The notes beneath the pieces are model-generated. The model saw only the letters and a list, made by a program, of their open reading frames with translations, ran no database searches and was not told the DNA's origin. From assembly GCA_038496445.1 (NCBI GenBank), contig JALMLS010000304.1, positions 434,001 through 498,000 of the forward strand: DNA of 64,000 nt, read 5' to 3'. Below are positions 8,882 to 13,900 of this stretch, piece by piece (positions within the stretch are counted from its first letter, which is position 1; every line of letters begins with the position of its first letter). The translations under genes and the position numbers were made by a program. Source of the stretch: Trichosphaerium sp. ATCC 40318. Taxonomy: Eukaryota; Protista; Tubulinea.

Positions 8882-10873
8882 ATGCGCCAAGCAACGCTTC
8901 TTATCGTTATATGCGTTTTTACGTATGTTCTATGCTTAAAAGCAAGTAACCAATTGCAAACAAAAGGTAACATTCCAGTGTTTACCTCTGTACAAGGGCT
9001 ACTACAAAACAAAGGAGCAAAATATGTAGGCGCTTGTACACCCGTTGTAAGGGAGCTTACTCAATGGCACCAAAGATCAGTCAGCGTACCATCTTGGAGT
9101 AGTAAAGGTGGCGACCCTAGGCAGAAGAAAGTACAAGCCAGGTTAAAACATGGCATTAAACTTTATGAAGACAGCGGTAGAGGAAAGTATATGGGTCGTC
9201 AAATAGGGACTCTTGGAGCTAGTATCCACGTACTAGTATTGTCAGAGTACGCCATACTTTTTTTTTTTGGCTAATACAAAACGGGCCTATTTTCATAAAA
9301 ATTCCGGTTTTTTCCGCTTTTTTTGAATGAAAACTAGTTCACATTCTCCGACTTTCACCGCATCTATGAATCCATTATTTTTTGTAAAATAAGAAAAACT
9401 GTTGTTTTAACATGACACAGGGAATCTATTCGGTCGCGTTCTGGCACTGTTAAAATGGCGAGAGTTTACGTACAAAATGGTCAGTATTCTAGAAAACACG
9501 GGTGGGTCCAATACTCCCTTTTGGAGTCACGTGGTTCAAAAGTGCTTGTTATGAGGATTGTACTTAGAGGTGGTAGTCTACAACAGCAAATCGGTAATCA
9601 ACGAGTGTATACACTAGCATCAAACTTAATTCCCCGTAATCAATGGTGTGCATCAAGACCAAGTTCAACAAACACAGCAGGTTCAAGGAGGCCAGCAAGT
9701 TCAAGAGGTAGATCACAACGCCAGCAACTGCTAGACAATGTGGGGAATGACAATGGTTTCTTTGCGCGTGTTACTACGCCCGTTGTCATGTGCGCTGTTG
9801 GTTTGGGAGAAGGTGCTCTTGGTACCTTTAAAAGCACTTTGGGTATGATAAAAGGGGTTGCCACAAGAAATCGTGATGCAATAATGTCGCCGTGGAGCCG
9901 GAACGCACGCAACAGGTTAATTCAAGCTGGTCAAAGAGACGAACAAGCTATTATTGCAATGCTCAGTCTATCAAAAGATGCTGTACCTAAAATCCATGCC
10001 TTTATGGAAATGAAGTATGCCGAATACAAGCGTCTGAATCCCTCACAACAGACAAGACGACTGTGTAATGTTCTTGGTTTTATATCAAGTCAACTATTAA
10101 CAGCCATCGCATCATTGGGAGGTCCCGTTCTACAAAACAACTTGGGCGCGTCACGATATGCTGCCTTGATGACTGCTACAAAATCAGCACAGCTAACAGC
10201 AACAAGGTTTGCTGCATTAACATCTTTAGTGGGGAAACATGCTGTAAACGAACTCACACGTGCTCTTGACACATTAGGAAACGTTGCTAGTTCTGTGTCA
10301 AAGTATCTAGCATACTCAGTTAAACACGCTGACAAGTTGCTTTCAACACGCAAGTATTATAAAGCAGCGGAATTGGTGAGGATTGGTTCTAGTGCAGTAA
10401 AGATATCAGCCGGTTTGGGAAGAAGGCTTGGAAAACGATTGACTGTCACCGTCTACCGTGGTTCTTTCAAACAATTCGCTGCAACTCCAAAAGATGTTTG
10501 GAATGTGGGTCCATGGAGTTTGAATGCTAACGGAAGGTACTCTCCTCCTGGTGTTCAAGCTCTATACACAACCACAGCAAAGTCTAAAGCTGTGGCAACT
10601 AGGACAATTGTTGCTGAGTTTAAAGGGTCTGCTAAAGCTGCGGATTTGATATTTGATTCAAAAGTGGTTAGGATAAATGCTCTTTTGGATCTAACAGATC
10701 CAAAAATACTAAGACATTTGGGTATTACTCGATCACAGATTATGAATCTTAATTCGTATGAATTGACCCATCAACTCGGTTATTTAGCTAAACAATATGG
10801 CTATGATGCTATCAGATTTCCATCTGCCCAAATACGAGAGGCAGCAAACATTGTTCTATTGTCCGGATTCTAA
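8882..10873 (+). CDS. Secreted protein with C-terminal RES-domain toxin (2 exons: 8882-9246, 9421-10873; about 605 aa)
   Basis: Signal peptide MRQATLLIVICVFTYVLC. A GTACGC donor at 9247 and CAG acceptor at 9420 join the two ORFs in frame (phase 2). The last ~140 aa carry RES motifs: VYRG, NGRYS, ALYT, VAE, LLDLTD, YELTHQLG, GYDAIRFPSA, ANIVL. Confidence 0.85.
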
Positions 10874-10960
10874 ATGTTGAACAATAAAAAAATCACGTGT
10901 TTTAGCACGTGTTAACATAAGAACGATAAATTTCGCTGCTTTTGATTTTTATTCTGTTTT

Positions 10961-13900
10961 TCAAACCAAACCAAATCCCTTACAATTGTTTATGGCTGTC
11001 AACACCCTTTCTTTCATTCTTGCCTTAAACGCATACTCTGGTAGTAGTAATAAAGAAAAACAAGTATGTGATGTTGGCAACCTAAATAAGTTGTTATAAC
11101 GCACGAGGAGAAAGGAAGAAAATCAGTTTGATTGGTTTTTCTTGGTTTTTTGTACCTGTCTGAATCACCTCCATTCTTTTGAATTCTAAACTGTAAACTT
11201 GCTAGACCTTTAACAGGTGCTCTATCAGATCCAGTAACAAAGAACAATAGTTTTTTCTTTTCTTCTTCACTCATCTCGTGAACAATCTAGAATTCAAAAA
11301 TAAGCTCTGAAAACAAAACGGTCTAAACATCTCTTGGTTTGTATGTTTTACCTCCCAAAACTGTTTGATGATATCATCAAATTTACCATATCCAATATAC
11401 TCTGTTACTTTTTCAAGTTCGTGAAAGTCAAGATCTAGAAAACACATGTCAAAAACTGTTTCGAAAAAAAACAACAAAAATATAATTACCTGTTTCTCCG
11501 CAAATCAGAGTTTCAAGTTCTTCTGGGCTGCAAAGCTAAACAATAATGTCACATAACAAAAAAAAAACGGGAACAACATACATTCAAAGCATCGCCTCCA
11601 CATAAGAAATGAAAGCCCTTACAACAGTACATAAGCAAACGTTGGATTTCGCTGAAAATGAAAAACTTATACCTTTGCAAACGCGTCGAATTGCTTCTCA
11701 ATAGACTTCTCCAATAAGTATTCCACATATAAATCTACAAACTCTACAAATTAACATTAAAACCAGCCACTCTTTGAAATCAAAGCAAACCTTTAACATT
11801 CTCCTTGGTGACATCTTTTGTGCTACCTACAAATAATTGATGAAAAAAACTAGCAAAAAAAAAGATTCTCAAACCTCCTTCAACAAGTTCAACTACTGTT
11901 GGTGTTCGGTCAATACCAGATTCTACTGTAATCTCAAAAGCAAACATAGAGGCCTCTAAATGGGCTTTTGGTAAGTCTAGCATCTTTTGAAGAGAGTTGC
12001 CAATAGCCTAACACGTGCAAATGTTAGAAAAAAAATTATAAACGTCTGAACAAAAAAAAAAGCGTACTGGATTCTGTTCCTTTAAATCCTCTAAAGTAGG
12101 TTTCATACCTAAGAGCCTCTTATAAATAACCAACGGGAAATGTATGTCGAGTATAACACCATTATAGATTGCTAAACCTAGAATCTTGCACCAGAGTTAA
12201 ACGAAGATAGAATGCTAATTCATGAAAAAAAGGAAAAAAAAAGGAATAAAAAGGGTAAGTCATTGAGTGGATACAATTCCAATAAACTTATAAAGTTGGT
12301 CTGCGTCTAAAGCGTAGTCACTAAACCAATAGGATCTATTCTTCTCATTATGAATCCATAGTCCAAAATCAACATTAAATATTTCTTCAACAAGTAATTG
12401 AAATAATTCTTTTTGAACGCCACCAAGATCTGCTCCTTCTTCACCTGAAAACTTTACTTTAAGTGGCTTCTTTAAATGTTCTGATTTTGCTCTTATTTGT
12501 TCAATCATATCAACAACAACATGAGTCCTCCTTACTTCAACAAGAAGAGAAGGAACAGTGGCTTTTTCAATCTGCTCAAAAGCAGCATTGGAAGAAGGAG
12601 TGTCATTCATGATGTACCCACCGTATGCTCTTAAAGTCATTGCATCTTGTATCTCTGACGCCATTTGTATAAAAGAGTCCAAGTGCATTAACTTTGCTTT
12701 CGCAAAAGGTCCAAAAAGGAAAGGATATTTAAAGAAAGAAAAATCTTTTGATGAAGATTGCTTGTCTTCTGACTTTGAATCTTTCCAATGCTTGTAATGT
12801 GTCTTAAAATTAAGCTTATTACATAAAGGCATATTATAAAAGTATGTATAAGGAACAATATCCTCAACAGCATTGATATTATCTAAGTAAACAAAGTGAG
12901 CACAAAAAAAACTACAAACAAAAAAATTCTTACATAATCTCTTCAGCAAAGTACAACAATTTTGTATCAACGTCGGTACTTTCTGTGGTGGAGTCCCTGA
13001 CTTGAATCCTGTATTTAATACGTATGTAATAACACTCAAAAGATATTCTAACTCATCACCAGTTGAATCAAGTTCTTTAAGTACCCTACAAAATGATACT
13101 AGCATAGGCTCTGAAAGTGCAAGTAAAACGAGAACAAAGAAATCAGAAATATTATTATACTTGAATGTCATTAACCCAGGCACCTTCAAAAAATTAGTTT
13201 CCTTATTTTGGTACCCACGTGTTTAAACAAAGGTATTTAGGATACAGAAAAGGTACCTTAAGTATAATCAGCAATGCACGTAGTTCACTTGGAACACTAA
13301 ATTTGCTTGCGTGTTTGATTAGAGTAGGCATAAGTAATTCAAGTGCATTCACCAAGGCGCTCTCTAGTATATCTTGCTTTGTTATTCTTGCATACGCCTT
13401 TGGTATTGATAGGATATCTAGGGGTATATATACAGTTGATAAACTATCAGTAGGGACATCTACCAATAACGTTTTATAGTCTCGCTTCAAGAATGAATTA
13501 TTCAACGCGATTACAGATGAAAAGACGCTTTTGATACGCTTCGCTAGTACACCCTGTTGATTATTGCTTAACGTTTTAACAACGTAAACATAGTTGATAC
13601 AATGTTGCACATTCTGTGAAGTAACAACATCTGCGGAAAGAGCTAAAAAGAAAGAGTTTATTAGCTAAAGAAACAGGTAATAAAAATCTTGCCCAGTGTC
13701 GTTTCGTCCTTAGAATGACCTCCACTGTAGAACACATACTTGTTTTCAGGTTCACTACTACTTTGTTCTGTGTTTTGTGTGCCTAAATATTTCTTTCTAA
13801 TTAAAAACTACAAAACGTGACAATCACGTGTTGAGAACCACATACCAAAGACCAAAAATCCAGGGTTGGTGTCTTCATATTCTTTTTTGGCAAACATTGA

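Follow-up and report, generated by a model that had tools for sequence, protein, structure and literature searches.

RES toxins of bacterial RES-Xre toxin-antitoxin pairs are cytoplasmic, single-domain proteins of ~150–250 amino acids (aa), each paired with an Xre/MbcA/ParS antitoxin. Those with solved structures all consume or use nicotinamide adenine dinucleotide (NAD+) (PMC12457610, PMC6436930). NAD+ is bound in an R-E-S pocket, MbcT and NatT being NAD+ phosphorylases and ParT an ADP-ribosyltransferase (PMC12457610), and residues R27, R47 and Y58 are essential in MbcT (PMC6436930). RES has been listed as a polymorphic-toxin end (Zhang et al. 2012, PMC3482391), and bacterial toxin/effector domains, ADP-ribosyltransferase (ART) families included, have been described as recruited by eukaryotes (PMC3417536). 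Here, 64,000 nucleotides (nt) of the genome of the amoeba Trichosphaerium sp. ATCC 40318 (70 Mb, 642 contigs) were analyzed; the whole stretch (G000:C15:434001-498000) is referred to below as the window. The subject is a gene at 8882–10873 on its plus strand, the predicted product of which ends in a RES domain.

With modest confidence, this was read as a nuclear gene of bacterial origin for a 605-aa precursor of a secreted NAD+-consuming RES toxin, targeted to the endoplasmic reticulum (ER). Domain family, fold, key residues, bacterial kinship, modular make-up, a paralogue, eukaryotic surroundings and host-like composition are shown by sequence and structural models. The gene was judged to be horizontally acquired and probably to encode a functional secreted, NAD+-targeting toxin; we infer its splicing, expression, secretion, enzymatic activity, target and entry into target cells. 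Bacterial relatives are combined with eukaryotic surroundings and eukaryotic gene features, the pattern of a horizontally acquired eukaryotic gene. The shared front and interchangeable ends of polymorphic toxins were found as complementary matches to different bacterial proteins, at least six types of end and a paralogue in the same genome.

The RES domain of the window protein was compared with those of the RES-Xre toxins (MbcT 6FKG, NatT 8QNL, ParT 6D0H, P. putida RES 6GW6 and VPA0770 8GUG). Pfam family, fold and the R...R...Y...E...S order of pocket residues are the same, at a sequence identity of 12–19%. Because these are shared, the chemistry is probably also that of the RES-Xre toxins, either NAD+ phosphorolysis/hydrolysis or ADP-ribosyl transfer. 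Unlike them, the window RES domain closes a multidomain protein of 605 aa with a predicted signal, in a eukaryote whose genome has no such antitoxin. The tick and mite 'dae' amidases are eukaryotic genes from bacterial toxin/effector domains. Like such genes, the window gene encodes an acquired conflict enzyme, has gained eukaryotic gene features and has kept a (predicted) export signal; it differs from them in its domain, RES, and in that the whole bacterial scaffold was kept, in two versions with different ends. This retention, together with the definition of a bacterial module family, is what is new. The sequence-only reading, which had ranked the locus as the top candidate for a novel system, went too far in view of the two precedents cited above. 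Some fungal RES proteins may be listed in public databases. Judging by titles, no eukaryote-focused study was present among the 67 papers mentioning the RES domain in the library searched.

The RES domain

Searches and fold models were run with the 472-aa open reading frame (ORF) at 9455–10873, and positions marked ORF refer to it; the spliced 605-aa protein is a conceptual splice. The C-terminal RES domain proposed in the sequence-only reading was recovered with Pfam RES (PF08808; ORF aa 353–469) at 28.5 bits against a gathering cut-off of 23.2. In a six-frame scan of the genome with the same Pfam model, it scored 31.5 bits and was the sole RES match. NCBIfam and PADLOC scans returned no match, nor did a single-sequence search of the PDB.

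Residue conservation was assessed in a 57-sequence alignment, in columns conserved in ≥90% of sequences. R335, R361, Y371, E388 and S457 (ORF), carried by the motifs VYR, GRY, ALY, VAE and PSA, all fall in such near-invariant columns, and the R, Y, E and S motifs are kept as had been claimed. Their order and spacing resemble those of MbcT R27, R47, Y58, E69 and S126; the putative one-to-one match comes from this resemblance and not from superposition. The alignment profile matched MbcT (E 3.8e-5).

ORF aa 284–472 were modeled with AlphaFold2 at a mean predicted local distance difference test score (pLDDT) of 94.9 and a predicted template modeling score of 0.90. In a Foldseek search with this model, ranks 1–12 were all solved RES toxins (MbcT, NatT, VPA0770, ParT and P. 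putida RES; E 2e-7 to 9e-4, template modeling scores 0.40–0.61), followed by diphtheria toxin. The predicted ART-like RES fold is thus borne out by matches to MbcT and ParT. MbcT and NatT are the closest in structure, for which reason NAD+ phosphorolysis or hydrolysis, as in these two, seems more likely than protein ADP-ribosylation, as in ParT.

Gene structure and genomic setting

The longest ORF in the window (9455–10873, plus strand) has its own ATG at 9455; it and the upstream ORF at 8882–9274 were both confirmed in the ORF list. Joining of 8882–9246 to 9421–10873 (donor AGA/GTACGC, acceptor ACACAG/G) connects the two exons in frame and yields 1818 nt, that is, 605 codons and a stop, with 0 internal stops. 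The earlier gene model, in which two ORFs were joined through a GT-AG intron into about 605 aa, therefore stands in its coordinates and open frame. An in-frame TAA directly precedes the ATG at 8882. Features of the gene, and its paralogue on another contig, are listed below.

8882–9246, plus strand: exon 1 (121 codons + 2 nt); signal peptide and first beta-rich units
8882–8935, plus strand: predicted signal peptide, MRQATLLIVICVFTYVLC (from hydropathy and Cys position)
9247–9420, plus strand: proposed intron, phase 2, 174 nt, GTACGC...CACAG
9421–10873, plus strand: exon 2; TAA stop at 10871–10873
9421–9649, plus strand: remaining beta-rich units, ending at a conserved Cys (spliced aa 198, motif LIPRNQWC)
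9650–9751, plus strand: Ser/Arg-rich linker, predicted to be disordered (sequence; pLDDT <50 for ORF aa 64–106)
9752–10165, plus strand: helical middle module with two conserved Cys (alignments; helices at pLDDT 74–90)
10184–10444, plus strand: helices extending the RES cassette at its N-terminal side, with ...ELVRIGSS... (match limits of relatives; helices in the AlphaFold model)
10445–10870, plus strand: RES catalytic domain (Pfam, alignment, profile match to MbcT, AlphaFold/Foldseek)
10457, 10535, 10565, 10616 and 10823, plus strand: codons of the RES key residues, spliced aa 468, 494, 504, 521 and 590
10883–10888, plus strand: AATAAA, 10 nt past the stop; probable polyadenylation signal, from its position
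G000:C61:42327-43597 (L015 1033-2303), minus strand: paralogue, 405 aa (module-profile match)

The proposed intron contains in-frame stops and has a GC content of 0.32 versus 0.42–0.43 in the exons. Among 41 frame-preserving GT-AG pairs it is the shortest, and it is the one that keeps the most coding sequence. Its DNA occurs once in the genome, by which insertion of a genomic repeat was ruled out. The hexamer GTACGC is three-fold over-represented in the window (42 copies versus 14.2 ± 4.0 expected; 0 of 100 shuffles reached 42), which is consistent with a favored 5' splice-site motif of this genome. One intron of the neighboring HECT gene, identified by eye, has this hexamer as its donor too. 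Together, these features make the proposed splice junction plausible, even if introns at this locus are otherwise shorter. Examples of GTACGC sites in the window are found at 1365, 2260, 9247 and 12062.

Homology to the bacterial beta unit already starts ahead of the ATG at 9455, scoring 11.4 bits when the 11 residues from acceptor to ATG are included and 5.7 when they are not. Within exon 1, residues 41–88 align to the N-terminal repeat of the bacterial protein P0002 (...GYVGAGIPVIRMETV versus ...KYVGACTPVVRELTQ) at 24.6 bits, against 16.3 ± 2.2 for shuffled sequences (2 of 200 reached this score). Hydropathy (Kyte-Doolittle, 19-residue windows) peaks at 2.15 at aa 4–22, the strongest hydrophobic stretch of the protein; the second, at 1.61, is a borderline helix that closes the middle module, and there are no others. 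The predicted signal spans aa 1–~18 and ends ...YVLC, with its Cys placed like the lipobox Cys of bacterial relatives, the N-termini of which end LLQFSC, SLVQC, LAPGC and GASAC. Taken together, the evidence that exon 1 is part of the gene is moderate, not decisive. An SH3-like character of the beta-rich units, suspected from motifs, found no Pfam SH3 match and is not claimed.

The window has a GC content of ~38% throughout and is intron-rich, with only seven ORFs of ≥150 aa in 64 kb. WD40 exons lie upstream of the RES gene, and LRR, HECT, zinc-dependent dehydrogenase and CBF/Mak21 domains were detected in neighboring ORFs. A HECT ubiquitin-ligase gene (10961–13189, minus strand) is convergent with the RES gene; it has introns of 50–80 nt with donors GTACGC, GTACAA, GTTTG. 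and GTAA.., and AATAAA 8 nt past its stop. The GC content at third codon positions (GC3) of the RES gene (0.31–0.32) is inside the range of host ORFs (0.26–0.50), and its relative synonymous codon usage correlates at 0.71 with pooled host ORFs versus 0.46 with the P0002 gene.

The sequence-only reading had remarked that no Xre-type antitoxin is adjacent. The flanks of the RES gene hold WD40 and HECT exons, and the Xre/MbcA/ParS antitoxin domain (PF09722) was absent from the whole genome while being detected in control genomes. No immunity gene lies directly downstream, where 87 bp separate the stop codons of the RES and HECT genes. Homologues of bacterial immunity-like genes were not found in the genome with the profile used, a weak one. 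Stand-alone spare toxin cassettes were likewise not found, the genome having a single RES match and two module matches.

Bacterial relatives, the shared scaffold and the paralogue

An exhaustive HMMER search with the ORF returned 258 relatives, 34 of them at E ≤1e-10. All relatives whose contig was inspected are bacterial, as the sequence-only reading had anticipated, with flagellar, FUR, efflux-pump and transposase genes as neighbors; the closest identity is 35–42%. Word-index protein searches gave no relatives, whether the query was the ORF, the paralogue or alignment A6. Genome contigs and metagenomes were scanned for the module pattern, and metagenomes and viral contigs for that of the ORF, in each case with no match; an exact-protein look-up of the ORF found no entry. 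In a tree, the window RES domain was placed in a clade whose 29 members are all C-terminal ends of long secreted proteins (95% support by Shimodaira–Hasegawa-like approximate likelihood ratio test (SH-aLRT)), with no close sister.

Matches to bacterial proteins divide the ORF in two. P0002 (601 aa) matches ORF aa 18–244 at 41% identity; matches of P0004, P0006, P0007 and P0012 start at ORF aa 237–259 and run to the C-terminal end (P0004, aa 244–468). A module boundary is thereby set at ~ORF aa 244, where the P0002 match stops and the RES-tipped matches begin. With a paralogue of the same front and another end, the polymorphic-toxin architecture proposed earlier is upheld. Many other secreted scaffolds, as well as RHS-type fragments, carry RES ends too.

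P0002 is composed, in order, of a lipoprotein-type signal (LLQFSC), beta-rich units, an S-rich linker, the helical module and an unrelated C-terminal domain; its motif LEPRDC is resembled by the Cys motif LIPRNQWC of the window protein. Its contigs carry flagellar, FUR, HEPN and transposase genes (metagenome-assembled genome JAYTOT010000142, labelled Pseudomonadota bacterium GFS_4193). The helical module is marked by the motifs C..GLG.GA, RL..AG..DE, AVP.IH.Y and L.P.QQ.R.LC..LG and by two conserved Cys. It was also found in P0017, P0024, P0031, P0143 and P0145, and is present in 4 of 131 genomes of the bacterial lineage of P0002. At least six unrelated classes of C-terminal end, one of them DnaJ-like, are attached to it. 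Module-bearing bacterial loci include L002 8001-9806, L008, L009 1360-2580 and L010 652-3126.

An AlphaFold model of ORF aa 1–283 was weak (pLDDT 59 overall, 74–90 in the helical module), with beta strands of low confidence in the beta-rich units. For the module, no Foldseek match at E ≤0.001 and no Pfam or PDB relative was obtained. The suggestion that the helical middle is a membrane-insertion or translocation module found no support; what the alignments define is a conserved, Cys-bearing module with no fold relative. By profile comparison, the module is not a PT-TG pre-toxin domain; such a domain is carried by P0007.

The window protein shares parts with two groups of bacterial proteins. 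In the RES-tipped polymorphic toxins (P0003, P0004, P0007 and the G066 locus), the same RES cassette and its ~90-aa helical lead-in are found at 30–41% identity. These toxins have other front parts and, where inspected, an immunity-like gene directly downstream, whereas the window gene has no such gene and has an intron and eukaryotic neighbors. In the lipoprotein-signal family (P0002, P0017, P0024, P0031, P0143 and P0145; loci L009 and L010), a Cys-ending signal, beta units, linker and module are arranged as in the window protein, with module identities of 28–39%. None of these carries a RES end, their ends being DnaJ-like or of no known type.

A module-profile search of the genome returned two module matches in all, the window gene and the paralogue. 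The latter consists of two ORFs, brought exactly into frame by removal of a 53-nt GTACTC...TTCAG intron (proposed junction 43279/43225). It lies on a 286-kb contig, with F-box/LRR-like and C2H2-like genes, judged from their translations, as neighbors and AATAAA shortly past its stop. In its product, a signal that ends LLAHTAC is followed by a single Cys-terminated beta unit and a module with both conserved Cys. Its C-terminal end of ~150 aa differs from that of the window gene and gave no lead in Pfam, in the Atlas or in comparison with other ends. The paralogue has diverged strongly, with a module identity of 22% and a branch length of 5.7; support for its grouping with the window gene is 89/62. 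These data neither establish nor contradict one acquisition with later duplication.

Readings of the gene and their consequences

In the favored reading, the gene would give a five-part precursor consisting of a cleavable signal, beta-rich repeats, a disordered Ser/Arg linker, the Cys-bearing helical module and a RES cassette that appears to keep all NAD+-pocket residues. The N-terminal signal would be a relic of a bacterial lipoprotein signal. Co-translational entry into the ER would keep the enzyme away from cytosolic NAD+, and an enzyme that never meets this pool would explain why an antitoxin or immunity gene is needless. The protein might then be delivered to phagosomes or to the medium, where the RES domain would consume NAD+ in its target, whether ingested or competing bacteria or another eukaryote.

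Several observations weigh against this reading. The 174-nt intron exceeds the 50–80-nt introns of the neighboring HECT gene, and a word search of sequencing runs found no RNA run containing the stretch; one marine metagenome run contained 6% of sampled words from it. The homology of exon 1 is modest (p about 0.01 by shuffling), and the signal peptide was called from hydropathy and Cys position. A bacterial protein that combines this exact front with a RES end was not found, nor was an orthologue in another eukaryote. Finally, bacterial module-bearing genes are without adjacent immunity genes (at the loci inspected, no small gene was adjacent on the same strand), and some have DnaJ-like ends. 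By the logic of PMC3482391, these two features would fit effectors against eukaryotic cells, not bacteria, and point to such a target for the module family.

A rival reading is a silent or decaying relic of gene transfer, in which bacterial DNA is unexpressed or useless and the intron is a chance GT...AG stretch. The missing RNA run, the single RES copy, the lack of orthologues, the atypical intron length and the existence of 41 frame-preserving GT-AG pairs are all in its favor. Such a relic is unlikely in view of two exons that are intact over 605 codons in DNA of 38% GC, with every catalytic residue kept; host-like codon use and GC3 point to a stay in this genome long enough for a neutral ORF to have been disrupted. 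The donor hexamer is, moreover, the one favored in this genome, AATAAA follows the stop, and the very divergent second family member is also intact, with an intron of typical length (53 nt). An assembly chimera or bacterial contaminant joined to eukaryotic sequence might be suspected where every placeable relative is bacterial. It is nevertheless very improbable. An intron-bearing HECT gene lies <100 bp away and eukaryotic genes occur on both sides in one contig, GC and codon use are those of the host, a spliceosomal-type intron is required for the reading frame, no bacterial relative is closer than 35–42% identity, and the paralogue on another contig of 286 kb is also intron-bearing and flanked by eukaryotic genes.

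The enzyme could also act inside the cell that makes it. Bacterial RES, TIR and SIR2 defense NADases act by killing their own cell on infection, and an NAD+-depleting death or defense effector, started at the ATG at 9455 or held inactive, would kill the infected amoeba in the same way. The 472-aa ORF has its own ATG, and bacterial RES proteins act in anti-phage defense via NAD+ depletion according to a preprint (bioRxiv 10.64898/2026.01.28.702374). This is quite improbable given that bacterial beta-unit homology reaches upstream of the ATG at 9455 and into exon 1, and that a predicted signal peptide and a conserved Cys are typical of extracytoplasmic proteins. No sensor or regulatory domain and no antidote was found, and an NADase left free in the cytosol would kill the cell.

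Provided that the gene is expressed and its product active, RES NAD+-targeting toxins, so far associated with self-poisoning in bacteria and warfare between them, would become part of what a eukaryotic predator secretes as weapons. A whole bacterial toxin scaffold, beyond the enzyme alone, would then have been taken over. We suggest, tentatively and as a possibility less likely than not to hold in full, that the amoeba keeps a small polymorphic effector family, that the bacterial scaffold delivers its cargo unaided, and that this is the first secreted RES NAD+-toxin weapon of a eukaryote. In that case the helical module, which bacteria and an amoeba share and which bears at least six different ends, would become open to study. 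The analysis also defines a bacterial family of modular effectors with lipoprotein signals that had no name before.

Small genes beside bacterial RES ends

In the bacterial RES-tipped genes that were inspected, a gene of 116–160 aa lies directly downstream, with no Pfam match where scanned. These are presumably immunity genes; as such, they would mean that the enzyme endangers the cell that makes it, and they do not identify the victim. Examples were located at L005 734-1144, L011 6424-6846, L012 5995-6477 and L022 1131-1481. Three of these small genes are weakly alike (22–24% identity) and share a W.EMG C-terminus, and the RES-adjacent genes are candidates for a new RES immunity family.

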